Below are positions 3,001 through 59,500 of a stretch of DNA of 64,000 nt, in pieces; position 1 is the stretch's first letter; every line of letters starts with the position of its first letter. Where the stretch lies: positions 62,001-126,000 of the forward strand of contig NIVC01000452.1 in the NCBI GenBank assembly GCA_002269645.1, in the 5' to 3' direction. The position numbers and the translations under genes are program-made. The notes below the pieces were generated by a model that saw nothing but the letters and a program-made list of their open reading frames with translations, did no database searches and was not told where the DNA came from. Source of the DNA: Macrostomum lignano (lineage: Eukaryota).

Positions 3001-6000
3001 CACGACTGAAAGGTCGGGGGTTCGATTCTCAGCCCATTCGGAGCAATTTGTGTCTTTGAGCAAGACACTTAACTCTGCAATGCTTCAGTTCACCCAGCTG
3101 TAAAATGGGTGCCAGCATTAGCTGGGGTAATTGAGGGTGTGTGGCGACCCCCCAGTTCTTGGACTGAACAGCCGTACGCAGCCTTCAGATGCGCCGCGCA
3201 ATAGCTGCGGCTGAGCTGTCGGTTGCACATCTCGCTTATTGGGACAGGTGTAATAAAATATTATTAATATTATCAAGCCAATGCCAGCCCACCTCAACAA
3301 TGCAGTCAACAACGATGCGCAGCAGGCCCAGATTGCTTCTAGCATCCAAAGGCCGGCCAGTGTCCGGGTCGAGCTTAGGCCCGGCCAATCGGAGCAGGCC
3401 GGCCGGGCTCTGCAGCAGCGGCCGAATCGCCCGCAGTGCCGGGGCTCGCATCTGCACTGGCGGGTACAGCAGCATCCGGTTGAACAGGGCCTGCATCGGC
3501 GTGTGCAGCGGGGCCCTGGCGCCAACCAGCCAGAGGCAGCGGACGGCCAGCTCGTAGCAGGCCCTCGCGGCTCCCTCAGGCAGCTCCGGCGCACCGCTGG
3601 ACACGCCGGAGCCGCGGCCGAGTGTTGGCGAGCCGCCTCCGCCGCTGCCGCTGCCGCCGCCGGGCCGTTCGCAGCGCTGATTGGCTAGCAGGCTTACAAG
3701 GCAGGGACACAGTCGGCGCCAGAGCAGCTCGGCAAATGCAACGGAATTGGCGCCAACACGGGCGGGCAGGCGGGCTAAGGCGCTGCCGAGGCCGTCTAGC
3801 AGGATGGGCAGGGAGGCCCGGTTCGATGTCGCTGCGGATTCGATCCGATCAACCAGGTGAGTCAGCAGATCCATCGCGCCACTCTCCCATTCTTCGCTGG
3901 AGGCGGACACTTCGGCGCCATTGTTGTCAGCTGTATCGGCGGCATTGTCGTCAATTCCACCGCAGCGTTCGATGTAGCCGCGCAACAGCTGGGTCAGGGT
4001 GGCCTTGGCGGCCATCTTCACTGCCGAATCCGCGCCAGATAGGGAGAATGCGTCAACGCATGCCTGCCAAGGGGAAACAGGGAATAGCTTTATAGGAACC
4101 TTTTGTTCCATTCTTCCTTCTTCACCCCTTGCTGCTATTCAATTCTGTCTTCGCATTGAAATCATTCAGATCATTCAGTCTCCTGTGGTCTCTCCTTTAG
4201 CATCTTCTAGATCTCCTTCAGTATCTTCTAGCTCTATTTCAGTATCCGCTCTCCTTCGGTCTCCTCTAGCTCTCTTTCAGTATCTTCTAGCTCTATTTCA
4301 GTATCAGCTCTCCTTCGGTCTCCTCTAGCTCTCCTTCAGTATCCTTCAGTATCTTCTAGCTCTATTTCAGTATCAGCTCTCCTTCAGTATCCAGCTCTCC
4401 TTCAGTTATCCTCTCTCCTTTAGCATCTTCTAGCTCTCCTTCAGTATCCTCTGTCTCTCCTTCAGTATCCTCTGTCTCTCCTTCAGTATCCTCTAGCTCT
4501 CCTTCAGTATCCTCTGTCTCTCCTTCAGTATCCTCTGTCTCTCCTTCAGTATCCTCTAGCTCTCCTTCAGTATCCTCTGTCTCTCCTTCAGTATCCTCTG
4601 TCTCTCCTTCAGTATCATCTGTCTCTCCTTCAGTATCCTCTGTCTCTCCTTCAGTATCATCTGTCTCTCCTTCAGTATCCTCTGTCTCTCCTTCAGTATC
4701 CTCTGTCTCTCCTTCAGTATCCTCTGTCTCTATTTCAGTATCCAGCTCTCCTTCAGTATCCTCTGTCTCTGTTTCAGTATCCAGCTCTCCTTCAGTATCC
4801 TCTGTCTCTGTTTCAGTATCCAGCTCTCCTTCAGTATCCTCTGTCTCTGTTTCAGTATCCAGCTCTCCTTCAGTTATCCTGTCTCTCCTTTAGCATCTTC
4901 TAGCTCTCCTTCATCATCCTCTGTCAATCCTTCAGTATCCTATAGCTCTCTTTCAGTATCCTGTCTCTCTTCTAGCTCTCCTTCAGTCTCCTCTAGCTCT
5001 CCTTAAGTATTTTAATAAATCAAAAAGTGAGCATTTAGACACAGAAGCTGATTGATCGCAGAGAGCAGCTTTTCACCAGGCAATATTTCCCTTTTCCCTT
5101 CATGTGTACTGCAAGCAAAATTATAAACCTTATACCGCATTAAAAAACGTATTGAATAGCATTCAATTTTTAAAGCAATCAACAACTACTGCACCCAAGA
5201 AATGTTTCACAATGCTCTGTGAAACACGCCCTGGGTGGCAAGCTGATTGAGTTTCTTATTGCTGGCATTTCAATCTCCAACATTCCTATAGCTCTCCTTC
5301 ATCTTCTCACTCTAAGTTATTAAACTTATTCCTTCCTCTCTCCTCTCCTTCCCTACTTCCCAGTCTATTCCTTACCTCTCTTCTCCCTCCCTGCTGTCCT
5401 CTCTTTCTCTCTGTCTCTCCTCTCCTTTCCCTCTCCTCTCCTTTCCCTCTCCTCTCCTTTCCCTCTCCTCTCCTCTCCTCCCCTTCTCTCCTCTCCTTTC
5501 CCTCACCTTCCCCTCTCCTCTCCTCACCTTCCCCTCTCCTCTCCTCTCCTTCCTCTCTCCTCTCCTCACCTTCCCCTCTCCTCTCCTCACCTTCCTCTCT
5601 CCTCTCCTCACCTTCCTCTCTCCTCTCCTCTCCTTCCCCTCTCCTCTCCTTCCTCTCTCCTCTCCTTCCCCTCTTCTCTCCTTCCTCTCTCCTCACCTTC
5701 CCCTCTCCTCTCCTCACCTTCCCCTCTCCTCTCCTCACCTTCCCCTCTCCTCTCCTTCCTCTCTCCTCTCCTCACCTTCCCCTCTCCTCTCCTCACCTTC
5801 CCCTCTCCTCTCCTCACCTTCTTCTCTCCTCTCCTCACCTTCCCCTCTCCTCTCCTCACCTTCCCCTCTCCTCTCCTCACCTTCTTCTCTCCTCTCCTCA
5901 CCTTCCTCTCTCCTCTCTCCTCACCTTCCCTCTCCTCACCTTCCTCTCTCCTCTTCTCTCCTTCCCTATTCCTCTCCTTCCCCTCTTCTATTCCCCTCTC

Positions 6001-9000
6001 TTCTCCCTTCCCTCCTCTCCTCTGATTGTAGCCCCTTGCCTCCTTTCCCTCTTTTTTGCGTCTCTGTATCCATATCTTGTTACAATAAGGTTAAAAGTTT
6101 GAGTATACAAGTACCAACATTAGCCATATTATTCAGTTTTGTTAAAATCAATAAAGTCACGAGCAAGATAGGTTAATTAAAAAAGCAAAAATATTGCATA
6201 CAATCAGATAGTTAAATTGGTGTAACAAACAAGTTACCACCGCCATTGGCGTTAAAAAACCATATTAAATAACGCGAAAGTTACGTCAAATAAAATTTCA
6301 AACCTGTGACTGCACCGATTCCGATTGTCCGCCCGCGCCAGCTGACATGGCCCGAGAGGCTTTGTCAGCTAGCGGCACAATCACCGAACTGATTGCGTCT
6401 TTGAGCCTATTGCGAGAGGCTGCGTACACTGACACACATAGCTGGTGGTTGGCGCGAATACAGGCTTACTGTTGTGTATTATAAAATACGGATAGACAGC
6501 TAGGCTACAATACATGATGTAATGTGGGGCTGGCGGTCACTCCCGAGTCTTGAAGCATTGCGGGGAGGTGGTGGTCACTCCCCAGTCTTGAAGCATTGCG
6601 GGGAGGTGGTGGTCACTCCCGAGTCTTGAAGCATTGCGGGAGGTGGGGCTGGTGGTCACTCCCGAGTCTTGAAGCATTGCGGGCAGGTGGGGCTGGTGGT
6701 CACTCCCGAGTCTTGAAGCATTGCGGGGAGGTGGGGCTGGTGGTCACTCCCGAGTCTTGAAGCATTGCGGGAGGTGGGGCTGGTGGTCACTCCCGAGTCT
6801 TGAAGCATTGCGGGCAGGTGGGGCTGGCGGTCACTCCCCAGTCTTGAAGCATTGCGGGGAGGTGGTGGTCACTCCTCAGTCTTGAAGCATTGCGGGGAGG
6901 TGGTGGTCACTCCCCAGTCTTGAAGCATTGCGGGGAGGTGGTGGTCACTCCTCAGTCTTGAAGCATTGCGGGCAGGTGGTGGTCACTCCCCAGTCTTGAA
7001 GCATTGCGGGAGGTGGGGCTGGCGGTCACTCCCGAGTCTTGAAGCATTGCGGGGAGGTGGGGCTGGCGGTCACTCCCGAGTCTTGAAGCATTGCGGGGAG
7101 GTGGGGCTGGCGGTCACTCCCGAGTCTTGAAGCAATGCGGGGAGGTGGGGCTGGCGGTCACTCCCCAGTCTTGAAGCATTGCGGGGAGGTGGGGCTGGCG
7201 GTCACTCCCGAGTCTTGAAGCAATGCGGGGAGGTGGGGCTGGCGGTCACTCCCGAGTCTTGAAGCATTGCGGGCAGGTGGGGCTGGCGGTCACTCCCCAG
7301 TCTTGAAGCATTGCGGGGAAGTGGTGGTCACTCCCCAGTCTTGAAGCATTGCGGGGAGGTGGTGGTCACTCCCCAGTCTTGAAGCATTGCGGGGAGGTGG
7401 TGGTCACTCCCCAGTCTTGAAGCATTGCGGGGAGGTGGTGGTCACTCCCGAGTCTTGAAGCATTGCGGGAGGTGGGGCTGGTGGTCACTCCCGAGTCTTG
7501 AAGCATTGCGGGCAGGTGGGGCTGGTGGTCACTCCCGAGTCTTGAAGCATTGCGGGGAGGTGGGGCTGGTGGTCACTCCCGAGTCTTGAAGCATTGCGGG
7601 AGGTGGGGCTGGTGGTCACTCCCGAGTCTTGAAGCATTGCGGGCAGGTGGGGCTGGCGGTCACTCCCCAGTCTTGAAGCATTGCGGGGAGGTGGTGGTCA
7701 CTCCCCAGTCTTGAAGCATTGCGGGGAGGTGGTGGTCACTCCCCAGTCTTGAAGCATTGCGGGGAGGTGGTGGTCACTCCTCAGTCTTGAAGCATTGCGG
7801 GCAGGTGGTGGTCACTCCCCAGTCTTGAAGCATTGCGGGAGGTGGGGCTGGCGGTCACTCCCGAGTCTTGAAGCATTGCGGGCAGGTGGGGCTGGCGGTC
7901 ACTCCCCAGTCTTGAAGCATTGCGGGGAGGTGGGGCTGGCGGTCACTCCCGAGTCTTGAAGCATTGCGGGGAGGTGGGGCTGGCGGTCACTCCCGAGTCT
8001 TGAAGCAATGCGGGGAGGTGGGGCTGGCGGTCACTCCCCAGTCTTGAAGCATTGCGGGGAGGTGGGGCTGGCGGTCACTCCCGAGTCTTGAAGCAATGCG
8101 GGGAGGTGGGGCTGGCGGTCACTCCCCAGTCTTGAAGCATTGCGGGGAGGTGGTGGTCACTCCCGAGTCTTAAAGCATTGCGGGGAGGTGGGGCTGGTGG
8201 TCACTCCCCAGTCTTGAAGCATTGCGGGGAGGTGGTGGTCACTCCCCAGTCTTGAAGCATTGCGGGGAGGTGGGGCTGGTGGTCACTCCCCAGTCTTGAA
8301 GCATTGCGGGGAGGTGGTGGTCACTCCCCAGTCTTGAAGCATTGCGGGGAGGTGGCGGTCACTCCTCAGTCTTGAAGCATTGCGGGGAGGTGGCGGTCAC
8401 TCCTCAGTCTTGAAGCATTGCGGGGAGGTGGCGGTCACTCTGGAGTCGTGAAACATCGCTGGGAGATGAAGCTGACAGCCACTTGAGCAATTAAAAAGCC
8501 GGACACCTGCCCTTATTCATGGTGTTAATAAATTTGTAGCTTCGAATCCAAACAAATGAAGCATTAGATCACTAATAACGTGAAATGAAATAGGAACTTT
8601 AAGAACAGCTGATGAGCATTTTTATTATATTTTGTCACAACAGAACAAATAAAAATTTTAAAGTATAGAGAAGCGTGTCACACAACAAATAAAACAGATT
8701 ATCTAAGTAACATTCTAGCAAGCGCTTATCTGCAGCTCACCTCAAGTACGCGATTGACAACCTTGCCATGCCAGACCCAGCAGCAGGTGCAAACCATGTC
8801 CAGTAACAGCCGCATCACCTCAATCTGTTGACGGGTGTGAATGCATTCCATAATTTATATAACTAGTCCTATAATTCATTAATATACCAACGATTCCCAA
8901 TAGTACTACAATCCACTACTTCTATAATTCACTAATCTTATAATCCACTAATTCCATAATCCACTAATTCTATAATCCACTAATTCTATAATACAATAAT

Positions 9001-12799: not shown

Positions 12800-15700
12800 T
12801 TGAGTAGTTGAGCTGCTCTGAAACAGTGCAACAGAGAGGTCTAAAAATACATATTATCCTAGGCTTCAAAGCGAAGAGTATCTCATGTGGAAGTTGCATG
12901 CGATCAAATTTTGGGATCAGACTGTATCAGAACTGAAATTTTTGTTAAGTATTATGTTTATAACTTATGAAATAAAATTTTTCATAAATTGCAATAGCAA
13001 TAGTATACCCATAGCAATCAAAATCTGCTGGACTCTTTATGGATGCCTAATTTTTTGCATTGTCACTGACCCAATAAAATGTCATTTGGCATGATGCACA
13101 ATTGCTAGCTAACCAAGCCAATCCAGTTTGTATAATTTTTTGATAGCCAAATGATAAGTCACTAAATTGATAGCTAAAAATGAAAAGGAAAGGAAAGTAT
13201 ATAAGTAGCACAGCAAAGCAAAAAATGCAAAATTAAAAACAAGCAAAAACCAAATAAAAACAAAGTTTCAAAAAGAGTAAACAAAATCCTATTTTCTATC
13301 AAACTAAGTTGCATAACAAAGTTATTTTAGATATTGCATATATATATATACAATATCTTCCTTAAAAAACAAGTGAATTTGAAAATATTAATATTTTAAG
13401 CCTAGGATAGGACCATTCTATAAGCACTATTAAGGCAAAGAACTTAAGGTTTGTCATCCTAGATGACAAACTTTGGCTAGCAAGTTTTGTAAATAATTAA
13501 TAATACCAACTTTTTAGTCATTTCTACTACTACTAGGCCTATATAACCTCTTGCTTTTCTCTTATAGAAACCTATATAATTACCTAACTACTAAAGAGGT
13601 TCATGATCTTTATGAGTATTTTTGTAATAATAGAAGCTATCTATATATATATACTATTGTAGTGCAAAAGAATAATCTATTAACCAATGTCCAATGATTT
13701 ATAAAATCTTACTTATATTTTATCCTTTCTAGGCCTATTTGGTGCAATATGAATGATCATGCTTTAGCTGTTGAATAGAATTCTATGAATTACAGTATAT
13801 ATAAGCCTATAGAATGACTTGGCACTTCTATTCAAAAGCATACATGCACAACTCCCCTGATTTATACCAGTCATGCGACTTACTTTTTGACCAAAAATGC
13901 AACTTACCTGTAAAAGAAACCCTAACGCAATTATGGGTAAATGGCAAGAGTAATTATGACTGTCTTATAAGGGCTAAATGCCTTATCATCTAATTAGTAC
14001 TACATCTGTATTCTTTAGGCTGGGCATTTTTGCGACTCACCACAATTTACAGTGGCTAGATCAGCCAGGTCGGCTAGCAGTTGCGCATGTATGTTCAAAA
14101 GCAGTCAAAATAATTTAGACTTAGTTAATAAGACTTGCCAATCAAAATTTGCTAATAGTCAAGTCTAAGTAATCAAAATTTGTTGGTAGTTGAAATAATA
14201 GCAGTCAAAATTCTAGACCTAGTAGTCAAAAGCCATTAGAAATCAAATTGCAAGGAGTCAAGTTGCTAGCAATCAAAAGTCCAGAAGTCAAATTAGGGCT
14301 TATAATAATAAAAAATCAAGAAAAGACTTTAATTTTCTTTAAGACTTTAACTTTAAAGACCTAAAGAAAAGAAATAGCTACTACTAAAATAGAAAACCAA
14401 CTATCAAAAATATCAACACACTCACACTCACACATAGACTCACAAATGTTGATAGTTGGTTTTTTAATTTTTATTCTTATTATTTGCAAAGCAAGCAACT
14501 CTACCTGATTTCTATTACCGAAATGGCTGTTACTGAAGTCTGAAGTGGATTGTTACTAACCATGGTATATTTCACAACTGAGTTGGGCCTTGTCAAAATG
14601 ACTTATTAAGTTCTAGCTAATAGCTAGGCCCTAGCTAAACTTAGCAAGGCCTAACAAATAAAAAAATTCAAACTTAAAATTTTACAAGAGACCTAGGCCC
14701 TAAACTAGGCCCTAGTCTCTAGACTAGACCTTGTCAAAGAGTTGATATATTATATAGGCCTAGGACATCATAGGCCTAATTGACATAGTTTTTACGCCTA
14801 AGAAATTTATTCTTTTTAGGTTCCATACATAGGCCTATTTATACTCATATTCAGCTCAGCAGGCTTAGGCCTAGGCCTACCCCTATCTAGTATCTACATT
14901 TCTCCTTTGTTTCTTTTTTAATTTTTGTTGAGGTCCTTGGCTTAAGTTCTTTGACAAGCCTTTTATTAGCATGTTGTAGAGATCTAAGACGTTAGGTTTA
15001 TCAGGTTAAGTCAGGCAAGCAACCAACTAACCTGATTGCTGAAACATGAAAACAATTTTCAAGAGCCGTGATTTTCATCGGAGAATTTCGGGATCAAGTC
15101 AAAAGCTGTAAGCTGATCTGCCTGATCATTCTGCGTTCCGTCTAAAACTTTTTAATTGCTTTGCCTTAGCAATCAATCTTCTTCATAGAAAAAAATTTCA
15201 AATACCTAGGAGTAGTCAAATTTTAAAGAAACATTTTTTGCTTTTTGTTATTTTAAAACGGCATCAAATTTGATATGCGTGATTTGATTTGTTTTAGACT
15301 GTTTCAAAGAAAAATCAAGATTGGTTGATGGTTCCCAAGATAGATCCATTCAATTAGGCCTATTCTGATCAGCTTTTAGGTTTAAGTAGAAAAAAAATCT
15401 ACGTAATAAACGTCCCAATGTGTTTTAAATAATAGGCCTGTAAGGATTTAATGTAAATAAGGAAAAGGGAAAGAGATAGGCGGTGGTTCTTATTTTATTT
15501 AATCAAAAGTAAGAAGTATGGAGAAGTAGTAAGGCGAAGTAGTAAGGAAGTATCCGCTGTGGGCACCGTATATTTATAGCCATCAGGAGCATCGCCGGAA
15601 ACTTCTAGAAAATTTTAAGCATTATAACAAAACAAATATTAATTGTTGATTCCTATTAGATTTGCATTACTTGTAGTACTGCTTTACTGTAATAAATTAT

Positions 15701-21225: not shown

Positions 21226-21939
21226 ATGTTGCACTGTCAGTTGCCAAGCCTAGCCGCCAAGGCCAACAAGCCATCATGCTTGAGGACAGTCATTCGAGTC
21301 TGTCTGGCCAAGCAGTCCAGCCATAGCCAGCAGGCCCCAATCAGTGCTGAGCAATTACTAGCCAATGGTCCAACCATTGTGCCTGACCTGTTGAAAAATG
21401 CCGCCTATTCAAATAGGTTAACAATCTACAAATATAAGTACATCCTGCCAGTTAACCTTGTGTCCAGCTTTAAAGTAGTTCAGACTGGCAGCGTTTTGCT
21501 GCTTTGCACGGGCAATGGGGTTGGTTGGCTGTGTGGCTTTGATACCACATCGGCATTTACCTATCTGCTGTCGCTCAGCCTGCTCAGCCTTGGCGTGCTG
21601 GCTTACGCTTCCCTTCTGCTTCGCCGCATTGTTGGCGAGCTGTCTATTGACGGCCGCAACTCCAACATTGTTTACCTGGCCCACGTCAGCTTCTGGGGCC
21701 GGCGGCGTAACCTGGCCGTCCATCGGGACCACTTGGTGTTCACAGAGGAGTCCGGGCATTTCTCTACGCTGGAGGTGTCGGGCAATTCGTTCCCATTCTA
21801 TTTGAGCTTGCGGCCGTCGGCTGTTAGGAGCTGCATACCCGATCAGCTGGAGCAGCTGCTCAAGCCGGAGCTGCGGGTGGCCCAGCTGCTTAAAGAGGCC
21901 GCCAATAAGCAGCATCATCAAAAGCGTCAAGGACAGTGA
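21226..21939 (+). CDS. TMEM186: Transmembrane protein 186 homolog (TMEM70/186/223 family, mitochondrial), uninterrupted ORF, 237 aa
   Basis: FKVVQT, two hydrophobic segments, LLRRIVGELSI and VYLAHVSFWGRR recall TMEM186 (LKLAQT, FLRRLVGILYL, LRVAHLNFWGWR); basic N-terminus. The start is uncertain because an in-phase acceptor-like TGTCAG ends at 21240. Confidence 0.8.
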   Translation: MLHCQLPSLAAKANKPSCLRTVIRVCLAKQSSHSQQAPISAEQLLANGPTIVPDLLKNAAYSNRLTIYKYKYILPVNLVSSFKVVQTGSVLLLCTGNGVGWLCGFDTTSAFTYLLSLSLLSLGVLAYASLLLRRIVGELSIDGRNSNIVYLAHVSFWGRRRNLAVHRDHLVFTEESGHFSTLEVSGNSFPFYLSLRPSAVRSCIPDQLEQLLKPELRVAQLLKEAANKQHHQKRQGQ

Positions 21940-22697: not shown

Positions 22698-23699
22698 AAT
22701 GAATTCGGAAATTGCGTCTTCGTGTTAACATTGATGCGTGCTTTGTTCAGTCTTGTAGCACATGCACTGCAGGCTTATTGAAATGCTTCCTCGTATCGCC
22801 AGATCCTTGTCTAATTTGTAATTCAATATATTTTAAGGTGCATGGCAAAAACCTGTATTGTGTAAAGCAGTTGTCGCGAAAAATACATGTTTCGTGTTCA
22901 ATATTTCTTGGTTTTCTATTTTAGAGAAACAAATGGTATTATGCAATACACTGTTAACTTGATTGAGTTTGCAGATCTGCTAACATCTATTTTATAAAAA
23001 AGTATTGTTTTATAGAAAAAAACAGTTGATTGTGTCGATGAATTAATTTATTTGTTATGCTGTCACAACAAGAATCAAGTCGGCACCCATTTAAACCGGG
23101 TCTATGAATCTTGCTAGCTTGAAAAAAAATCTTGCCGTTTGCACTTTCTCTTCTCCAGATCAGCATTTCGGCTAGAATTATTAACTGTTGCACGTTTCCT
23201 AGCAGTAGCAAAGTTCAGCTGGAAATACATCCTCGCTAGAAAATCTCGCACTCCTGAACATTTTTTATTAATGCCAGCTTATTAGGACACTGCATGCGCC
23301 TTGCTAATCTTTCAAATGTCATCAGCAAGTCGATGACATCGGCAGTTTTCTTCCTTGAACTTTTAACAGATGACAGGTCTGACAGCTCTGACGAGATGAA
23401 GGCCCCGAAGGAAGCAGTTTCTGGCAAAGCAACTCTTGTCACGTGTTGTGATTGAGAAGCATCTTTGAGTCCCTCTCGATTCTGGTTTAGTAAGAGGGTT
23501 GGAGATGTTCGCTCCAGCCAGGATGTTTTTTCTTCAGAAACTGGGGTGAAAATCTGCAAGAATCTTTTTCTCTACTCTATCTCTCGCTATCGCTGTCTCC
23601 TTCGTTCTGCTTTATTTCTTTTCCTATTTTGCTAAAAATATATAGCAAATTTTAGTTTCAATATTCCACATGGACAATCTGTAAAAGTTCTCTCAGGAC

Positions 23700-24730
23700 T
23701 AGCCCATTTTGCGCTTCGATTCTGGACTGGACTAGACCATTTGGTGCTTCGATTCTGGACTGGACTGGACCATTTGGTGCTTCGATTCTGGACTGGACTG
23801 GACCATTTGGTGCTTCGATTCTGGACTGGACTGGACCATTTGGTGCTTCGATTCTGGACTGGACTAGACCATTTGGTGCTTATAAATTCTGGACTGGACT
23901 AGACCATTTGGTGCTTATATATTCTGGACTGGACTGGACCATTTGGTGCTTATATATTCTGGACTGGACTGGACCATTTGGTGCTTATAAATTCTGGACT
24001 GGACTAGACCATTTGGTGCTTATATATTCTGGACTGGACTGGACCATTTGGTGCTTATAAATTCTGGACTGGACTAGACCATTTGGTGCTTATATATTCT
24101 GGACTGGACTGGACCATTTGGTGCTTATAAATTCTGGACTGGACTAGACCATTTGGTGCTTATATATTCTGGACTGGACTGGACCATTTGGTGCTTATAA
24201 ATTCTGGACTGGACTGGACCATTTGGTGCTTATAAATTCTGGACTGGACTAGACCATTTGGTGCTTATAAATTCTGGACTGGACTAGACCATTTGATGCT
24301 TATATATTCTGGACTGGACTGGACCATTTGGTGCTTATAAATTCTGGACTGGACTAGACCATTTGGTGCTTAGATTCTGGACTGGACTAGACAATTTGGC
24401 GCTTATAGATTCTGGACTGGACTAGACCATTTGGTGCTTAGATTCTGGACTGGACTGGACCATTTGGTGCTTAGATTCTGGACTGGACTAGACCATTTGG
24501 CGCTTAGATTCTGGACTAGACTGGACCATTTGGCGCTTAGATTCTGGACTGGACTGGACCATTTGGCGCTTAGATTCTGGACTGGACTGGACCATTTGGC
24601 GCTTAGATTCTGGACTGGACTGGACCATTTGGTGCTTAGATTCTGGACTGGACTGGACCATTTGGCGCTTAGATTCTGGACTAGACTGGACCATTTGGTG
24701 CTTAGATTCTGGACTGGACTGGACCATTTG
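23700..24730. repeat. 32-35-bp minisatellite (TTCTGGACTGGACTAGACCATTTGGTGCTTAGA)
   Basis: Direct tandem repeats whose variants change gradually along the array. Confidence 0.97.
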
Positions 24731-26630
24731 TTCATTATAGCTGCTGGCCTTAGGACTTAAAGTCTCCATTCAGCCCTTAGTTGACATTCCCTCTATAGCT
24801 AAGCAACAAAACATTCGCGTCATTAAAAGATTAGCATTTGGGTGCTTTTTCCTTTGAAAATGGAAGTTTGCATCCGTTTTTCGCGCAGCTTTACAGCCAG
24901 CGATAAAAAGTTCTAAGAAAAAAGTCTCTTCCGTCTAAGTTCTCGTTGGCTCACTCCTCAATAATGTAGGAACAGTGTGCGGAGAGTTCGTTCATGGTCC
25001 TTGAAGCTTCAGTGCGGGGTGACGCGAGTTGACTTTGAAGGCAAGGTTGAAATGAATTTAGCTCGATTTGTCGCAAAAGATGCAAAAATTTTCCTGTTCC
25101 GCGCTCTTATCTCTTAAAAACAAAACGACCATTTTTTGTAATTAGTAGCTAGCGGTTAATAAAATTAGGATTCATCTAATTAAGCTTCCACTCAAGCGCT
25201 TTTCGCACCTGCCTAACATTTCGAGGTCAACGACGCATAGATTAGTCTAATTATAGTTTTGTTTATAATGCTGTTTATTGTTTGTCATCTTTGTGGCACC
25301 TGCGACATTATAATTATTAGTAATCAGCGTGGTCATCGCATGCTTATTACATTATGAGCTTCATGTATTTTCATTTGTTGTATCAACGTAATGACCTTAA
25401 GCTAGGCCTTAGCTTAACAATTGATAGCATTTTAAAGACTAGGTCAACAACCATATAAAAATTGATATTGGTAAGCATTGTCTATATTTAATCATTCAGA
25501 CAGGTCTAGGAATAGCTACTAATATATGCATGCAAATGGAACTATGCCTACAATAATGGCTTAAGAGTAGCTGTATGCAACAATTTTATTACAAAAATTT
25601 CACTTTTGTGTATTTACAACTTAGACTTGGACTTATGAAATATAAACAAAATGAAATGGAAATGAAACTTTTACAATACAACAGAGTAACATCCTGTGCA
25701 TGCTAAATTAAAGAAATGGTAATCTTCAGGAAATTTGCCTAAAAAACGAAACGATTTTGAGTTTTGAGTCGCACGTCCTGTTATACTCCAGTGGTCCTTG
25801 GTAATGCATCAAATTTTCTGGAGTTGTCGAAGTCGGGGGTCTTCCTCGAGCGTCACTCGAACCAGGCGAAATTTCGTCAACCAATCAAACACAGAATTGT
25901 TTTTCGCATATGCACTACAGTCAAAGGCTAGTCAAATTCGCTTGAAGCTTTACGACTGCGGCAGGCCACTTTTATAGTCATACTTGAATTAAAAAATCAC
26001 GGCTGTCCAGTTGAAGAGTGCCAGTTGCCAGGTAGGTGGACGTTTAGAATCAAATTCTGATGCATACGTAGATTGATAGTGCAGCCTTTACATTTGGTTT
26101 GTAGGCTCGGAATATCTACATGCTCGTAATTTACCTGGATGTGTGCAATTTTTTTTGCTGCGAATCCTGGATGGCCCTTAAACTTACTGAACGCACTCGA
26201 AAAATACAAGTGCCAAGGAAGTACACGAAGCCATCTGAGCTCTACCGCGGGAGAAAAGCTTCATATGTAATCAACAATTAATATTTAAATGCTGAATTTG
26301 CATGCATTTCGCTTTCCGTGTGCAGCAGAGAAATCTTTAATCAAATTGATAATGAATCATGAATTTCCATGCGATCGAGCTTGGCCGCTGCTTTGATCGA
26401 GTCAAGCTATAGACACGCAAATGCGCGAGCACTGTACTGAGTCGGATTTCTGTAGGGACCTCACTGCAGGATCAGCTTCATTATCCAATGATTGCCAGCC
26501 TCTGACTGTCATTGGCCACGATCGTCTGATTGCGAACGCTCTAAAATAAAGATGACACGTCTCTATCGGAGCGTTGCGGATGCCTTGCTGGAATTTTTTC
26601 AGGGTCAATACTGTCAGTATCAAAAAATTT

Positions 26631-29596
26631 ATGGACTTGGATATCATTTACCGACTGGAGCACCTGCTAGGAGCTGATGACGCCAATAATGCAACGTTGG
26701 CTGCGCGTGAGCACCTCGGCTTGTGGTTTGTGCGTCATTATCCGAGTAAGTTGTTTACGCAATTGTTACGCTGCAAATTGACATGCGCGCTCCGCGTTTT
26801 TTTGCATGTTGTCTTTATCCTTCATCCCGGACTTTGAGGGTAGTGCATGCAGCTTGTGTGCGTCATGCTTACAAACGCGGAACATCCTGATGGTCTTTCG
26901 ATAAGAGCTATGTACGAGCGCGTATAGTATTTATCTGATTTATTTTTCAAATTAAAGCAACGAGTATATCACTGACGAGCGTATACGTAATTTATCAGCA
27001 GTTTTCTATAGTCCTGTCACCAAATTACTGACATTCCTGTCGTCAAAACATATTTTCCAATTATTATTCAACCTTATTGCACCCATGGAGACACAGCTAT
27101 ACAAGTACACAGCAAGGTTCCTTTAGGTTGAAAATGATTTTTACATGTACATGTGACATGTAGCAAAAATCAGTTGTTATTATTACTGAGTTCATTTTAT
27201 CTCCGTTGGCAGTTTACGTAGTACTAATGTGCCTATCGGCCGTGCTTGGTACCTTCGGTAACATCCTGGTGATTTCAAGCGTGCTCACGGTTAAGGTTGG
27301 TAACTAATCGATTAATTTAAACGAAAAGCATTTGAAACCTTCTCTACATGTACCTTCTAATGCAGATCGGCGTAATCTTATAAATGTTTTATTTTGCAGA
27401 AGCTTCGCTCCGCGACTAACAATAAATTCATAATTAACCTGGCCTTCGCTGACGTCACAGTCACCGGCATGGTCATCCCGATGAATATTGTTGGTAAGTC
27501 TTTCCTAGTACTTAAACCCCAGAGCTTCATGCTTGCTGGCGAGAGCAGAAAAGATTTTCAGATTGCCATCTGGTTAACTTCTGTGCTAAGAATTTAAGTC
27601 GGTCAAAGTCAGCAGTTGTGAAATCAATAGCGCATTTGCGAATGGCCAAGACGGGAAAGGCTCAAGTAGACTTCGAACTGATTGAAAGCGACAATTGCAA
27701 GGAAGTTGAAGAACAGGTGACAGGATCGGGAAATAAAGGAAATGTTTTTAATGAGAACACTCTTGAAAACATCCGATTAAGCATGAAAGCAGGGCAGCCG
27801 TGTTAAATCGATGTGTCAATATTAATTTGGCTAAATCATTAGCTTTTGTCGGATTGAATTAGAGCATGGGCAAGGTCACAGTCTCATGACAGAACTCTCA
27901 GGAAAGTCTCAGGAAGATGTCCCACGGGTAAACACCTGTAAGCATGCAATAAACTTGCATAGGTAAACACCTTATCATAACGCTCCCAAGGACTACTAGA
28001 CTACATAAGGAAGTGTTCCTAGTGGTCCTTGAACGCTCCCTTTATGATTCCCAGTCTATTTCATCAAGAAAAATAATTACGTCAAACAGGCGTCTTCTAC
28101 GGTGAAGAGTTCTTCGCAGGCTTACCCGGCTTGTGCTCGACCATCGGCTTCTTCTGCCTGACCTCGTGTTTCTGCTCCCTGCTCAACATTGGCGCCATCG
28201 CGTTCAACCGCTACATCTGCATCTGCCGTAATGCTAGCTACGTGCGAATATTTAGCAATAGAAACACTAAAATAGCCTGCTTCTCATTGTGGATTTTCAG
28301 CGCGATTGCGGGTAAAATTGTGGATTTTTTGTGTCAAACTTCGACAACATGTAGCTGTGCTGAATTTTATGTGACAATTGTAGTGGACACTGGCCTTTTC
28401 AGTACAAAAAGTCAAATTAGTTTTACAGCGTAATGTATATGAGATTTTTATGATGTACATGGATGGAATAGAAACTATCAGCCTGGTGTCTAGGGGAATT
28501 CCAGCCTGGTATCGGGGGGAATTCCAGCCTAGTGATTGAGGGAATTCCAGCCTAGTGACTGAGGGGATTCAAGCCAAATGTCTGAGGGAATTCCAGCCCT
28601 GGTTTCTGAGGGAATTCCAGCCCTGGTTTCTGAGGGAATTCCAGCCCTGGTTTCTGAGGGAATTCCAGCCTGTCTAAGGGAATTCAAACCTAGTGTCTGA
28701 AAGAATTCCAGCCTAGTGTCTGAGGGAATTCCAGCCTAATGTCTGAGGGAATTCCAGCCTAATGTCTGAGGGAATTCCAGCCTGTTTTCTGAGGGGATTC
28801 TAGCCTTATGTCTGAGGGAATTCCAAGCTAGTGTCTGAGGGAATTCAAGTCTGTTGTCTGAGCAATTCTCTTGGGGACCATTTTCGATGGATCTCCTATT
28901 CGATTTGTAGTTTCTCCGAACTTTTTCGGCTGGGGCGCCTTCAGCTTCGACGACAAGCAGTTCGTGTGCGCGTACGACCGTCTCGCCGACTTCTCCTACA
29001 CACTGTTCTTCGCTGTGGTTGGGATCTACATCCCCCTGCTGGTCATTGGCGTGTCCTACGCCAGAATCTACCTGTTTGTGCGCAGATCGCGCCAGCGCCT
29101 CTCATCTTCATCAGCTTCGCAATCCACTTCGAGCTCCGGCCTCTTTAATTCAACGTCTACCACTGGACACCGCAGGCTCCGCCGTGAACTGGTCATGCTC
29201 CGAACTTTCTTTGTCGTGTTCGTGACCTACGCATTCTGCTGGATTCCCTACGCAACCATCGTGGTCACTGACGTGTCCAACAGTTTCCCAGTGCAGGTGC
29301 ACGCGTTTGCTGTGCTGCTGTGCCACTCTAATTCCTCGTTTAATTGCATTATCTACGGCCTCTTTAATCGGCAGTTTCGAGACGCTTATCTCAGTATAAT
29401 CTGCAGTAGGGGTGTTCGGGTCGGCCATTTTTTCGGGGTTCGGGGTTTACCCCGAACCCGGTACCCATACCCCGAACCCCGAACCCCGTCCCGAACATTT
29501 CTTCCAACCCCGAACCCCGAACCCGGTACCAAAACCCGACCCGACCCCGAACGTAACCCCGAACATTTTCACGCTTATTTTGGTCAATCATTTTAA
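26631..29596 (+). CDS. Class A GPCR, melatonin-receptor/Tre1-Moody-like (NRY motif); present allele 399 aa with a transposon-derived C-tail
   Basis: Exons 26631-26745, 27213-27295, 27400-27493, 28090-28311, 28911-29596; phases 1,0,1,1. Motifs: N-glycan site NAT, TM1 GN, TM2 NLAFAD, TM3 AFNRYICIC, TM6 FCWIP, TM7 NSSFNCIIY, helix 8 NRQFRDAY. Confidence 0.88.
28480..28855. repeat. ~22-bp minisatellite (GTCTGAGGGAATTCCAGCCTA), GPCR intron 4
   Basis: Direct tandem repeats. Confidence 0.93.
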
Positions 29597-30685
29597 TAAA
29601 TTAATACACTTTTTCCACCGATAAAGGTACAATATTCATTTGTACTTCACTTCAATTGTAAGCCTTTTGGGCGCGACGTTAGCTCATGAATGACTTGGGA
29701 CAAACACAGGTTTATATTTGTTGTATAAGTGTAAATGGTATACTTCTTGCAATGGGATTGGGATTGAGATGGAAGGAATACCAAGACCCAAGATCTAATT
29801 AGTAAGATACATGAAAGTTCACAACTAAAATCAGGACCATTTCGTACCTATACTTACAACGAAATTGCTTTCATAGTAATATTACATCTATGAGTTTATT
29901 TAAGCTGCAAAAATAGAGTACAATAAAATTAGATTATACCCTGTAGTGTAGATATCAGTAGAGATAGAACTAGAGCGATAAAGAGATAGCACAGATAAAA
30001 CAAAGATACAATGAAACAGGAGAGTTAATCACAAATATATATTTATTTTTACTTTTGACTACAGTTAACAGTAAGTCAGTAGTTGTATAACAGAATTGCT
30101 ATGTAAAAACTAAAGTGACGTCTTTACATAAAATTGTATGCTGATATGAGTAGGTAATCATTGTGATAATTGATTATTGGCGACTGATGCGTGGAGAATA
30201 ATAGTGTATTTATAAATTTTAAGCTTCCTCATCCAATCCAGAAGTTCATTCCATGTTACACGTAGCACATGTAAAATTAATACTGAACGTAATTTTTTAA
30301 ATCATCAACTGCAAGACTGAATGGGTCGAAAAACGACAATCGTTATTTACCAGAAAGTGTAAATGAATCCATGGTTCTATCTGCTATTTTCGTTTCAAAT
30401 TGTATGTAAAATATAACTTAAGTTGTACCTGAAACTCAATGCATATCTTTCGCATTGTGGATTTTGCATAAGGAGTAAAAAGTGCTTGAAAATACTCTTG
30501 AGAATGATAATTGTTCAAAACCCCGAAAACTCCGAAAACCCGGTGGCCAAACCCGACCCGAACCCCGAACCCGGTACCCCTACCCCGAACCCCGAACCCG
30601 ACCCGGAACACCTACCCCGAACCCCGAACCCGGTACCAAAACCCGACCCGAAACCCGACCCGACCCCGAACCCCGAACACCCCTA
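29407..30685. mobile_element. Non-autonomous hAT element (1279 bp) inserted in the GPCR coding exon
   Basis: Perfect 14-bp TIRs TAGGGGTGTTCGGG ... CCCGAACACCCCTA; perfect 8-bp TSD ATCTGCAG (29399-29406, 30686-30693); subterminal CCCCGAA/CCCGA motif clusters at both ends; AT-rich interior with no transposase ORF seen. Confidence 0.92.
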
Positions 30686-30693
30686 ATCTGCAG

Positions 30694-30951
30694 GCTGCGC
30701 TGCTCTGGTAAGTTCAGAATCTTTGAGTCAGCTGCATGCACTAGTAGTGAGTGCCTCTGAGTCCTCATCGGCAAACTCACTTCATCAAACCAATCCTTCC
30801 AGTCGACAGGCCTCGCCAAGCCGGTCGCGTGATGGCCAACAACCGCCATGGTGGCGCCGCTTCTTCGGCCAACGATGACAACACGGGCTTGCTGGAAATG
30901 CGCAGGGTTGACGGACAGGTCGGAACTAACAGCGACTCGCGCGACTCATGA
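30694..30951 (+). CDS. Displaced original 3' coding end of the GPCR
   Basis: After removing the element and one TSD, the frame continues IIC-RLRCS, then GTAAGT donor (30708), TTCCAG acceptor (30802) in phase 1, then VDRPRQAG...NSDSRDS* (30803-30951). Reconstructed protein is 390 aa. Confidence 0.7.
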
Positions 30952-31039
30952 GTGCCGATTTCTGTCGACAATTGTTTTGACAATTGACTGTGACGTCGAC
31001 CGCACTTTGACTGAAGAAAGTACAAGTGCGCTCGTGTTG

Positions 31040-31345
31040 GGGCTCGTGTGTGCACGAAGTTCGTCCGGAAGGTTTTCGTGCGATTCACAGCCATGAGGAC
31101 CAACCCCCAAGGCGCACAGAGTGTACATGCCTGGTGATTAGACAGTCAGGACCGCTGTACACCCTGTGTGAGCGTGTGCATGAGTGCTGTGCCTGCGTAC
31201 AGTATTGGCGCGCTTGTATTGTGCTCAGGAGCCAGCGGAATGGGCAGAATTGCCGTCAGCGCTGGTTGTTAGACGATTTTGCCAAAGGCATTGCGCGAGG
31301 GTGCCCGCAGCCCTCTTGTAAATATTATTAATATTATTATTAACG
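31040..31345 (+). mobile_element. Dispersed SINE-like repeat (second family), 5'-truncated, AT-repeat tail
   Basis: 31093-31197 aligns by eye with 58229-58329 (+), 51949-52030 (-) and 2372-2420 (+); ends in AATATTATTAATATTATTAT. Confidence 0.65.
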
Positions 31346-31646
31346 TGTGTGTAGCAGTGTGTGTGCATCGACTTATTCGAGACTGAATGGCGTTCCATTG
31401 AGCAACTATTGACGATCCTAGAAGGGAAACTAAAGTAACAGTCCTTGTAATCCTAAAGAACAGTAAATACTCTATTATATATGTTTATGACATCACCTAT
31501 TTGTTTAAGTTTTTGTCCTGCGGGCTGCGCCCACTAAATCGTTCACGAATACACACACTTATTCACCCTGATACGCTGCTAGGATGGATAAAATGGCAAT
31601 TTTTCGCTTTTGGCATATTTCTTTGAAACTGCACATTGACACTGCA

Positions 31647-31648
<2 letters not shown>

Positions 31649-31736
<88 letters not shown>
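31649..31736. repeat. (CT)n microsatellite
   Basis: Perfect dinucleotide run. Confidence 0.98.
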
Positions 31737-31738
<2 letters not shown>

Positions 31739-32529
31739 GTGGCAAAAACTTTCTGGCAAAGGCTAAAACTTCATTTTCTCCCCACCCCCTCACTCTCGTG
31801 TTTCTCCTTTCTCTGTCCTGTCAAATGTTGTGCAAGAGAAGGCATGCAGCTTGAAGAACAAAAGACCGCTTGAAATAGTTGGGGCTGGTTGGACTTTTTT
31901 ATTAGCTAAGGCAAGCTCTCCAAACAGCTCAAAACCATTTATTATTTTTTTTATATTTTTCAAACCACGAAAGGTGAAGCTGAAGCAGAACTCAAGCTGT
32001 GGCTTCTGTTTCGCAAGCTTTTCGAGCCGGCAGGTAGCAGGACGGCTAAGAAGGCAACATTTTAAACCGTACACCAACATTCATTATTCATGTACGACCA
32101 GCTGCTGTGTAATGTTTACTGTCTCAACCTCTGCTGTTAGCATTAGAATAATAAGTAGTCAATTACTTTAAGTATAAAGCAGGCTATAAAGCTTTCGAGT
32201 TAAGAATGAAAGTACAAATCGTCTTTCTGATCTGATACAGTCACGTGACATCTGGCTCCAGCATCCAACTCCCCTAAGCGTCGCCTGACATAAGACTCAG
32301 TCAAAAATGAATTTATAGACTTGGGGTTAATGATGCACAGCTTAAATACTTGTGCCCTCGCAGTGCTGGCGGTACTTTATAAACAAAATTGAACAGGCAA
32401 AGTTGCCCAGCTCCATAAAAGACAGTCAATGCGCATTTTGAAAGTTTTCTATCTCACTACCCTCCTTTCAATTTGACAATGCCTGGGGTGGCGCAGACTA
32501 CTTAGTGGCAGGAGTTTGTTGAGATATCT

Positions 32530-32870
<341 letters not shown>

Positions 32871-33317
32871 CCGGCTATTCCATGGCCTGAGCACACTCTC
32901 TTCGCACGGCACAGCCCGGCCGCATGCAAGCATATTTCAATGCGTGGGTGAAGCTGCCTCAGCTGCAGGCTTCATTTTTCTGTGCCCAACGAATCCACCC
33001 GCACCTCCCCCTCTTCGATAATAAGCTGGGACAGCTGAGCTCTTCCTTCGCCATCCATTTTAGTCGCAGGATTGCGGCGGCCCGCCTTGGTATTGTGACA
33101 CGCCCTCCACCCCAGCCTCCACTCTAGCAGATGCAGCTACGCCCAGCGCTATTGCCGAGCGCAGCACAATAGAAAATTTAAACGCAGTGGACAGGAAGGC
33201 GTGGTGAGCCCACCGCGCAGGCAGTGCTGCCCTCTCGGGCCCACCCATTCGCCCGCTGCAGCCGCCCGAACTCAGAGTTGGTTTCGGGGGGGGGCAGCTG
33301 CTCAGAAAGATAGATAG

Positions 33318-39283: not shown

Positions 39284-53145
<13,862 letters not shown>

Positions 53146-56529: not shown

Positions 56530-59500
56530 TTATTCTCTACTTATAGAACACTGTTAACCGTGCGCCACAACCACACGACAGAAGACGTAATGTAGGCCTA
56601 ACGTTTATGGTTGACGCGTACACTTAGGCTTTATGTGTTAATAAACCCTGCTCAACAATGTATACTTACATCTCCATTGCCGCCTTCGAACATCATGTTA
56701 GAATAGCGCTTAAACGGGTAGGCAAAGCTCGATGTCTGCTGCATTGGTGGCTGCGGCCGCTGCAGACTGCCGCTTCCAGGCTCAGTGTAGGCGTACGCGT
56801 TGTTGACCTCTGGCTGGTCCAGATGCGCCCGAGGTATGCGACCTCGATACTGTGACAAGGACTGAAGTGTTATTGTTGGTTAGGCTGATGTTGAGCATTA
56901 TTGGAAAAGTAACAGATGATAAGATGTCTAAATTGACACGCCCGTATGCGAGATAATGCGCGGCACAAAAAGCAAAACATGTAGCAAAAATGGCACTCAC
57001 AGCGTCATTCCGCGAACCGTACGTGGAGACAACAACGGACTCCTGAGGCGAACTGTTATCAGCGATAGTCTTGGCCACTCGCTTTTTCAACCGTTTCTGA
57101 CGCCGGTTCATGCACAGCATGCCAGTCACCACGGCGACTATGATGACGAACAGGATTGGCACCACAATCACCAGGGCAAGAACGGCTGGGCTCAGCTGGA
57201 CAACAGAGCAGCTGTTTCCAGTGTAGCCAGTGAAGCACTCGCAGGTGAAGTTCTTGCCTGTAACCGTTTTGCAGATGCCGTTTCCTGAGCAGGAGCTAAC
57301 AGTGGAATCGCATTGCTGTGTGCAAACTGTGCCCTGGTTGCTGGTGTCGGAGTCCAGGTAGCCTGGGCGGCAGGTGCAATTGTAGCTGGTGCCCGTTGGG
57401 GTGCAGGTGGCGTAAGGCGAGCAGCCAGCCTCACCGGTGGCGCAGAAGTCGTACGCTGAAAGTTAAAGAAGCGGCTTTCTTTTATGCGAAATTTTCCTAT
57501 TCAAAGTAAGAAAAGTAGAATGTACGAATCGAGGAAAGTGGCAAGTGCAAGAAAAGGATAGTTGGTGAAGTGGCAGGCAATCGGTAAAGACAGTTGGTAA
57601 AGTGACAGACAATTGGTAAAGACACAGTCGGTAAAGTGACAGGCGATCGGCAAAGACACAGTCGGTAAAGTGACGGGCAATCGGTAAAGACACAGTCGGT
57701 ACAAGACCGTATTGCGGTCCCTACGCGTTGCTGTGGTGTTCTCAGCCGAAAAGTTGAACGCGCTGGCGTTGACACTGGAAGCGAACGCGGTTATTCCGGA
57801 ATCCACGTCCGAGGCGATGTCGCTAGCCGACATTCCGGGACTGGACGTGTTGGTTCCGACGTCCAGCCTATAGGTAGTGACCACCGATCCTGGCTCCAGC
57901 TTGACAAGTACGAATTGAAAGAAAGCGCTAGAGAATTGGCGATTCGATGACATCGACAGACAGGCGCGCATCTGAAATTTGAGTAAACAATTTTCGTTGG
58001 AAAGTGCACACAAATAGACTAGAGTAATAGAAGCTGCTTACATAGAGTTCAAATTTTGCGAAGAAGCTGATCGACGCGGCTGAATCAATCTGATTGAAGT
58101 CGGTGATAAAAGAAACTCCAACTATTCTATTTCGTGCTGTCACTGTGTTTCTCTCTGAAATCGAGTTGCTATCAATTATAAAATCACTGTTTTCAATCAC
58201 GGAAAACAGAAGTACAAGGTGACGCCTAATGAGGGCCAACCCCCAAGATACAGAGAGTGTACATGCTTGACGATTAGAAGTCAGGGCCGCTGTACACTGC
58301 TTGAGCGTGTGTATGAGTGCGTGCCTGCGAACAAGTATCTGGAGCTTGTACAAGAACTTTCCCTGACTTTCCCTGTACAAGAACTAATTTACTAAAGCAA
58401 ACAATCACTCACTAAGCTGGCATCTATCACCAATAAATTTTGATCCGCAAGAGCATCTCCTGATGCTTCCAATATAAAAGCACGGTCTGCCATTCTGACA
58501 ATAGTTGAGCGGACACTGCCCAGCTTCTGTAGTCTGCACGACGCTCAACGGAGGTGTTGTTGACAGTGTTGATAAAGAAGTTGATGGCTCTGTCACAATG
58601 GGACTTGGCTGAGGTCCAGTCGATGCAGGACCTGTTGGCTGCGGTCCAGTCGGTGTAGGACCTGTTGGCTGAGGTCCAGTCGATGCAGGACCTGTTGGCT
58701 GAGGTCCAGTCGATGCAGGACCTGTTGGCTGAGGTCCAGTCGGTGAAGGACCTGTTGGCTGAGGTCCAGTCGGTGTAGGACCTGTTGGCTGAGGTACAGT
58801 CGATGCAGGACCTGTTGGCTGAGGTCCAGTCGGTGTAGGACCTGTTGGCTGAGGTACAGTCGATGCAGGACCTGTTGGCTGAGGTCCAGTCGATACAGGA
58901 CTTGTTGGCTGAGGTCCAGTCGATACAGGACCTGTTGGCTGAGGTCCAGTCGGTGTAGGACCTGTTGGCTGAGGTACAGTCGATGCAGGACCTGTTGGCT
59001 GAGGTCCAGTCGATGCAGGACCTGTTGGCTGAGGTCCAGTCGGTGAAGGACCTGTTGGCTGAGGTCCAGTCGATGCAGGACCTGTTGGCTGAGGTCCAGT
59101 CGGTGTAGGACCTGTTGGCTGAGGTACAGTCAATGCAGGACCTGTTGGCTGAGGTCCAGTCGATACAGGACTTGTTGGCTGAGGTCCAGTCGATACAGGA
59201 CCTGTTGGCTGAGGTCCAGTCGGTGTAGGACCTGTTGGCTGAGGTACAGTCGATGCAGGACCTGTTGGCTGAGGTCCAGTCGATGCAGGACCTGTTGGCT
59301 GAGGTCCAGTCGGTGAAGGACCTGTTGGCTGAGGTCCAGTCGATGCAGGACCTGTTGGCTGAGGTCCAGTCGGTGTAGGACCTGTTGGCTGAGGTACAGT
59401 CGATGCAGGACCTGTTGGCTGAAGAGTACTGGATGGAGGAAGAGATCCCATCGGAGGAGTTCCGGATGGAGGTGGAGATCCCATCGGAGGGGTGCCAGAA

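Follow-up and report, generated by a model that had tools for sequence, protein, structure and literature searches.

Several transposons of the hAT superfamily have been described that bear on a stretch of 64,000 nucleotides of the flatworm Macrostomum lignano (contig NIVC01000452.1, positions 62,001 to 126,000; this whole stretch is called the window below), in which a hAT-like element interrupts a gene for a G protein-coupled receptor (GPCR). The nearest architecture is that of maize Ac/Ds, especially the ~1-kb Ds-l4/Ds2 type. Maize Ds elements have a target-site duplication (TSD) of 8 bp, short terminal inverted repeats (TIRs) beginning C/TAGGGATG, a hexamer that occurs many times within 200 bp of each tip, a length of about 1 kb, unrelated filler DNA and no transposase (PMC3260210). 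All of these features recur in the M. lignano element, which differs from Ac/Ds in its flatworm host, in its hexamer (CCCGAA/TTCGGG, not AAACGG), in the length of its TIR (14 bp, not 11) and in its left end, where the right subterminal region is copied in direct orientation. Among animal transposons, Hermes, hobo and Tol2 share with it the nTnnnnAn target, the 8-bp TSD and short subterminal repeats (PMC10368747), a likeness in TSD, target and repeat layout; in Hermes the subterminal repeats are bound by the BED domain of the transposase and are concentrated towards the tips (PMC10368747). Non-coding hAT-derived MITEs (miniature inverted-repeat transposable elements) also occur in animals, Mar of Drosophila being an example (PMC3517528). 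For maize Ds/Ds1, exonisation has been reported, the hAT element adding sequence to the mRNA and altering the C-terminal part of the protein (PMC5395267, PMC5432752). DNA transposons make up 3.05% of the M. lignano assembly Mlig_3_7, and no description of hAT elements in M. lignano, or of the family of this element, was found in the literature.

The M. lignano element sits just past helix 8 of a melatonin-receptor-like gene and is absent from a paralogous scaffold that carries the exact empty site. As an event of a familiar sort, this copy-specific insertion is ordinary and does not demonstrate innovation; the explanation favoured here, and held to be probable, is that one redundant homeolog of a neopolyploid genome was truncated or knocked out and that this was tolerated. 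The locus offers an expected event in a clean and datable form, in which one gene copy in a young polyploid persists after a transposon has landed in its coding sequence.

Structure and classification of the element

The insert, delimited by reading of the sequence and by a repeat search, measures 1,279 bp with 39.6% GC and is bounded by a perfect 14-bp TIR, TAGGGGTGTTCGGG, and by a perfect 8-bp TSD, ATCTGCAG, whose two copies directly adjoin the inverted ends (Table 1). At the left junction ATCTGCAG is followed by TAGGGGTG, and at the right junction CACCCCTA is followed by ATCTGCAGGCTG. The TIR occurs in just these two copies in the window, even when two mismatches are allowed. Moreover, in a scan for an in-register 8-bp direct repeat combined with an inverted repeat of at least 10 bp, both perfect, the element was the sole match in the window, and the same scan returned no match in 200 Markov-1 simulated windows. 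A 10-bp TSD, TAATCTGCAG, was considered and rejected, since the inverted ends would break; the extra TA matches the TIR end by a coincidence of one in 16.

The two ends are rich in the hexamers CCCGAA/TTCGGG, of which the left 200 bp hold 11, the right 200 bp hold 10 and the interior none; on the plus strand, 18 of the 21 CCCGAA copies of the window fall within the terminal 200 bp of the element. The left end is properly inverted for about 40 nt and then repeats the right subterminal region over 116 nt (84%) in direct, not inverted, orientation (29449-29564 compared with 30562-30671), so that the ends are asymmetric. No transposase was found in the element, the longest open reading frames (ORFs) of which, at most 92 aa, are all repeat translations, and its AT-rich interior contains no ORF of note and resembles nothing else in the window.

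TIRs of hAT elements are short (about 10-25 bp) and begin YARNG, a rule that the 14-bp TIR of the element follows. Its first bases, TAGGGGTG, are identical to those of Ac/Ds, TAGGGATG, at seven of eight positions (PMC3260210), and the TSD, whose second base is T and whose seventh is A, fits the hAT target consensus nTnnnnAn (PMC10368747). Judged by these characters the element is classed as hAT-like and non-autonomous, and it displays every hAT feature that can be tested on a single copy. The other superfamilies that generate 8-bp TSDs (P, Merlin) appear less favoured given the TIR and the target motif, and assignment to a family within hAT (Ac, Buster, Tip100) would require the transposase. 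The original prediction of a hAT transposon with perfect TIRs and a perfect 8-bp TSD is therefore borne out, the combination being unique in the window and accompanied by the nTnnnnAn target, the Ac/Ds-like TIR and the subterminal hexamers. No second copy of the element was found in the window (TIR with at most two mismatches, and blastn) or in 22 kb of the paralog, a search that covered a tiny part of the 764-Mb assembly, and metagenome contigs scanned with the 22-nt right end gave no match.

A candidate 255-bp MITE was also noticed at 13831-14101, with 9-bp inverted ends CATACATGC / GCATGTATG and a flanking perfect 8-bp repeat, TTCAAAAG, that fits nTnnnnAn; about 0.1 such cases per window are expected by chance.

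The empty site on the paralogous scaffold

M. lignano is known to be a hidden polyploid, 70-85% of Mlig_3_7 being present in three copies, S, L1 and L2 (PMC10733133). Its subgenomes differ by a single-nucleotide divergence of 2.2% overall and 1.1% in coding sequence (CDS), and by length-weighted indel differences of 36% overall and 5.5% in CDS, among which large insertions dominate (PMC10733133). The paralogous copy of the locus was reached through a gene 2.4 kb downstream that carries the Pfam 'trematode PH-like' domain and whose ORF is 100% identical to the M. lignano protein A0A1I8GVJ7. The 90% cluster of this protein holds two NCBI proteins on two Mlig_3_7 scaffolds, and both loci were fetched with 10-kb flanks. 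One is the scaffold of the window itself (L003; window position equals L003 position plus 23317), and the other, NIVC01001710.1 (L004), is a paralogous copy of the whole neighbourhood, with 98.1% identity to the window at the aligned bases of the receptor gene.

The alignment of L004 exits the window at 29406 and resumes at 30684, the overlap being exactly TAATCTGCAG (L004 7199-7208). At this point L004 reads CTCAGTATAATCTGCAGGCTGCGCTGCTCTGGTAAGT, with one target copy, no element and no excision footprint (empty site TATAATCTGCAGGCTGCG), and its sequence is that of the predicted pre-insertion state, in which the element and one TSD copy are deleted; the TIR was not found in L004. Because L004 holds the exact empty site, the insertion is real, derived and copy-specific, and younger than the ~2% divergence of the two copies. 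An empty site on a duplicated chromosome had been named beforehand as a check on the original prediction, and NIVC01001710.1 provides it. The earlier description of the insertion as recent stands by virtue of this paralogous site, and not by the perfection of TIR and TSD, which at 44 bases are too short for dating at ~2%.

It is exceedingly unlikely that the element was placed in the scaffold by repeat mis-assembly. As much as 36% of the length of Mlig_3_7 lies in subgenome-chimeric scaffolds (PMC10733133), but mis-assembly does not produce a perfect 8-bp TSD around perfect inverted ends where the paralog runs on without interruption. The locus resembles the copy-specific indels reported between S, L1 and L2, with 1.9% divergence overall and 0.6% in CDS, one transposable element (TE) insertion and minisatellite length differences; that analysis was genome-wide, and neither the receptor gene nor the element is described in it (PMC10733133). 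One of these minisatellites, in intron 4 of the receptor gene (23-bp unit, 28479-28862), is ~270 nt longer in L004 (~6000-6630).

The insertion shows that a hAT-like non-autonomous family moved in M. lignano after the subgenome copies had diverged by ~2%. Such recent movement is relevant to transgenesis in this model organism, in which transposon-based transgenesis is difficult (PMC5730564). In addition, the pair of filled and empty sites in one assembly can be used as a marker that separates the paralogous chromosome copies.

The host receptor gene

The exons of the host gene were set from tblastn matches of homologs, reading frames and splice consensus. They define a six-exon class A GPCR gene with canonical splice sites and a native product of 390 aa. 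The complete Pfam 7tm_1 profile (PF00001, E = 4.8e-45, profile positions 1-260 of 260) is matched upstream of the insertion, and the CWxP motif is present. Among named proteins, those nearest to it come from a nemertean, a chiton and an annelid and are called 'melatonin receptor-like' (40-48% identity), and the nearest solved structures are MT2 (7vh0, E = 2e-35), GPR50 and MT1. Similarly to vertebrate MT1, MT2 and GPR50, the protein has NRY and not DRY in the third transmembrane segment (TM3), and its helix-8 motif aligns as NxxFRxxY; unlike them, it has NCIIY in place of NAxxY in TM7 and extra introns, and is ~30-35% identical to them. On this resemblance the receptor is classed as melatonin-receptor-like within class A. 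No GPCR paralog was found within the window.

The position of the insertion relative to helix 8 was read from an AlphaFold model of the contiguous exon-5 product, in which helix 8 comprises model residues 153-165 (pLDDT, the predicted local distance difference test score, 85, then 71). Residue 164 is the Cys that forms the last native residue, residue 165 is the first that the element encodes, and what lies beyond is low-confidence coil. The insertion is therefore at the end of helix 8, as had been stated before, and all seven transmembrane segments and the first Cys after helix 8 survive, with the whole 7tm_1 profile upstream. The native tail that is cut off depends on a predicted splice, 30707^30803; its 54 residues (RLRCS plus 49 aa) include one further Cys, six Ser and two Thr, which matches the earlier description of a 54-aa tail with a second Cys and several Ser/Thr. 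The donor of this splice, at 10.7 bits, is the strongest in the gene, and the acceptor reads ttccag. In the last exon the predicted frame alone is open, with a GC content at third codon positions of 0.69 compared with 0.68 in the rest of the CDS, and the splice sites and ORF of the tail are conserved in the paralog. The tail intron of the M. lignano gene is not shared with its Lineus and Liolophura relatives.

The receptor is annotated on neither Mlig_3_7 scaffold, in window 23318-33317 or in L004 506-10000, the annotation being transcript-based (PMC5730564), and the protein database holds no M. lignano protein for it, the best match being a nemertean protein at 48% identity. The missing gene models are weak evidence for low expression of the receptor, and the gene is here brought to notice as unannotated.

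Table 1. Features of the interrupted receptor gene and of the inserted element (window positions)
Feature	Position	Strand	Remarks
GPCR exon 1	26631..26745	+	MDLDIIY...NNAT...HYP; start codon, N-glycosylation sequon; resembles N-termini of homologs; 99.3% identical in paralog
GPCR exon 2 (TM1)	27213..27295	+	downstream intron position common to Lineus and Liolophura genes
GPCR exon 3 (TM2)	27400..27493	+	downstream intron position common to Liolophura gene
GPCR exon 4 (TM3 with NRY, TM4)	28090..28311	+	
GPCR exon 5 upstream of insertion	28911..29406	+	extracellular loop 2, TM5-TM7, NCIIY, helix 8 NRQFRDAYLSIIC
Left TSD copy ATCTGCAG	29399..29406		receptor codons ATC TGC AG; single copy in paralog
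Element-encoded 63-aa tail	29405..29596	+	SRGVRV...FGQSF; stop TAA 29594-29596; Pro/Glu/Arg/Thr-rich
Non-autonomous hAT-like element	29407..30685		absent from paralogous scaffold L004
Left TIR TAGGGGTGTTCGGG	29407..29420	+	
Left subterminal repeats	29415..29565		57% GC; 3 TTCGGG then 8 CCCGAA; source of translated tail
AT-rich interior 'filler'	29593..30515		923 bp, 31% GC, no CCCGAA/TTCGGG
AATAAA overlapping stop	29595..29600	+	second AATAAA at 29922
Right subterminal repeats	30516..30685		65% GC, 10 CCCGAA; ends in right TIR CCCGAACACCCCTA (30672-30685; TAGGGGTGTTCGGG on the - strand)
Right TSD copy ATCTGCAG	30686..30693		makes cag/G acceptor-like site at 30693
Exon 5 orphaned 3' end	30694..30707	+	..RLRCS, then donor G/gtaagt
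Orphaned predicted last exon, native tail	30803..30951	+	49 aa and TGA 30949-30951

Read-through, polyadenylation and splicing

In the insertion allele the frame runs from FRDAYLSIIC into SRGVRVGHFF and on to FGQSF and the stop, adding 63 element-encoded residues for a product of 399 aa. The read-through tail and the overlap of its TAA with AATAAA agree with what had been claimed. The new tail contains 9 Ser/Thr, 12 Pro and no Cys, compared with 8 Ser/Thr and 1 Cys in the native one. The CCCGAA repeats are stop-free in every plus-strand frame; of the three frames that enter the element, two remain free of stops for 62 and 71 codons, as far as the beginning of the AT-rich core, and the third hits the TAG of the TIR at once. 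In the opposite orientation two of three frames give 23-34 codons. The core holds two AATAAA hexamers, for 1.9 expected from base composition. Because the openness of the frame and the AATAAA count both follow composition, the new tail and the hexamer look like by-products of the base composition of the element and not like acquired functions, and the earlier claim of a meaningful tail with a poly(A) signal of its own is not supported.

These observations bear on the reading in which the insertion allele yields a transcript that is polyadenylated at the AATAAA of the element and translated into a working receptor, with a Pro/Thr/Arg-rich tail that alters palmitoylation, handling by GPCR kinases (GRK) and arrestin, or trafficking, and which would be a case of TE exonisation in progress. 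Such a functional re-tailed receptor is judged unlikely from the composition of the open frame and the hexamer, even though all transmembrane segments, helix 8 and Cys336 would be kept, the number of Ser/Thr would hardly change, and the AATAAA is followed 8-20 nt downstream by CA and a T-run. AATAAA is also absent near most neighbouring gene ends, occurring within 500 nt at one of the five gene ends examined in the window. The end of the receptor gene itself is no exception: the 2.3 kb past its native stop (30952-33317, +) contain no AATAAA or ATTAAA, and variants such as AGTAAA at 31462 are found there. The lack of a gene model on either scaffold speaks against expression as well, and the RNA of the left end of the element folds into a hairpin of -62 kcal/mol within the new coding stretch. 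Moreover, the paralog lacks the element, so that nothing points to its retention by selection. The phrase 'exonisation caught in the act', which had been applied to the locus, is speculation; a chimeric receptor that proved to be expressed and to work would, for an animal, be a rare example of GPCR re-tailing by a DNA transposon.

Cryptic splicing was surveyed over all GT donors in 29380-29700 and all AG acceptors in 30300-30710. Three GT donors lie upstream of the stop (29406, 29420 and 29553); they score 2.2-2.5 bits, compared with 4.9-10.7 bits for the real donors of the gene, and they shift the frame by -1, +13 and +146 nt, respectively. The sole good acceptor is derived from the TSD (ctaatctgcag followed by G, at 30693; 61% pyrimidines), and the best pairing, 29406/30693, yields ...IC-SCAAL-STGLAKPVA and a stop, a 14-aa out-of-frame tail. 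As the surveyed sites included no frame-preserving option, the idea that splicing removes the element cleanly was rejected.

Splicing of the element as a new intron, in the manner of Ds/dSpm in maize exons, would leave a near-native or short-tailed receptor. The acceptor of the right TSD and the GT dinucleotides upstream of the stop are compatible with it, and Ds/Ds1 exonisation and splicing are documented (PMC5395267, PMC5432752); given donors this weak, each of them frame-shifting, it is nevertheless considered very improbable. The comparison with maize is limited in this respect: Ds/Ds1 supply the splice sites, whereas here the donors are weak and the predicted peptide arises by plain read-through.

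Three outcomes for the transcript may be envisaged. Cleavage in the AT-rich core would give the chimeric receptor. Read-through of the whole element with splicing of 30708-30802 would place the stop ~1.1 kb upstream of the last junction and probably make the RNA a substrate of nonsense-mediated decay (NMD). Cryptic splicing through the right-TSD acceptor would have to use the weak frame-shifting donors.

State of the two copies and fate of the interrupted gene

The element aside, the window copy is intact. The CDS of L004 differs from it by seven substitutions and one deletion; four of the substitutions are synonymous and all of these lie in the core from TM1 to helix 8, the three non-synonymous ones being L13P and, in the tail, A360P and A361T. 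That none of the four core changes is non-synonymous has P = 0.003 under neutrality, and the synonymous divergence (dS) of the core, 0.0185, is about that of non-coding sequence. On the strength of these four synonymous and zero non-synonymous changes, and because dS is close to non-coding divergence, purifying selection acted on the receptor during most of the period that followed the split of the copies, and both lesions are late. The lesion in L004 is a single-base deletion: a run of C5 in the window (29032-29036, +) is C4 in L004 (~6830-6834; contexts ACATCCCCCTG and ACATCCCCTG), which shifts the frame in TM5 in that copy only. It is one of two single-base indels in 3.6 kb and may be either a real, independent disabling lesion or a PacBio homopolymer assembly error.

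Two different lesions in the two reachable copies, together with the lack of annotation on both scaffolds, could mean that the receptor gene is being lost outright, both copies being dead, the gene unexpressed and the insertion having struck a gene that no longer mattered. We regard this too as improbable, since the constraint on the core lasted for most of the time since the split, splice sites and ORF are intact apart from the two lesions, and a third copy is expected, though none was seen. The deletion itself may be an error, as it stands in a homopolymer and the assembly is PacBio-based, with multi-mapping as an obstacle to its polishing by short reads (PMC10733133). The same selection data could be turned in favour of a working re-tailed receptor, the core being constrained and the sister copy appearing frameshifted, so that the insertion copy could matter; however, the four synonymous changes cannot say which copy was constrained, or whether constraint outlasted the insertion. 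An elaborated form of that proposal holds that the homeologs diverged in fate after whole-genome duplication, one being frameshifted in TM5 and this one re-tailed by the hAT element, still expressed through a poly(A) site in the element and altered in palmitoylation, arrestin handling or trafficking. It is thought very doubtful; if true, it would provide a dated, sequence-resolved first step of TE-driven GPCR neofunctionalisation in a neopolyploid animal.

The tolerated loss or truncation of one redundant homeolog is preferred to these readings. A hAT-type cut-and-paste element hit one homeologous copy of the melatonin-receptor-like gene after the divergence of its sister, and its integration duplicated the 8-bp target ATCTGCAG one codon past the Cys that closes helix 8. 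Translation would then run into the CCCGAA subterminal repeats and stop 63 codons on, at the AT-rich core, and the native 54-aa tail is cut off together with its intron. Functionally, the truncated copy would most likely be a loss-of-function or hypomorphic one or else selectively neutral. The insertion would have been tolerated because the genome is about triplicated, most loci having about three copies (PMC10733133).

Several points weigh against this explanation. The seven-transmembrane core, helix 8 and the first Cys are untouched, and class A receptors that lack their tail or carry an exchanged one often still signal, so that this copy is not necessarily null. Annotations often overlook neuronal GPCRs of low expression, which makes the absence of gene models weak evidence. 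If the TM5 frameshift of the sister copy is real, it weakens the argument from redundancy, and the insertion copy may be among the few with an intact seven-transmembrane core. Finally, a search by way of the neighbouring genes found no third copy of the receptor; the upstream ORF at 21226-21939 and two UniRef-only neighbour proteins are not on record; for the PH-like neighbour the database holds just two protein variants.

Other features of the neighbourhood

Further along the window, an ORF of 701 aa at 58405-60510 (-) combines ~30-33-nt repeats rich in Pro, Ser, Thr and Gly with a Cys-rich, EGF-like end, and has no Pfam match. A gene for an SLC4 bicarbonate transporter lies at 40352-50946 (-) of the window (L003 15967-21877, L004 16156-21878), its annotated product being 735 aa on the scaffold of the window and 1,259 aa on the paralogous scaffold. 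A database search with an exon of this gene gave matches at 55-63%, mainly to flatworm fragments. Large minisatellites lie in the introns of the gene, such as a 74-bp unit in 23 copies at 48474-50177, and minisatellites occupy many introns of the window (48 rows in the Tandem Repeats Finder, TRF, output).

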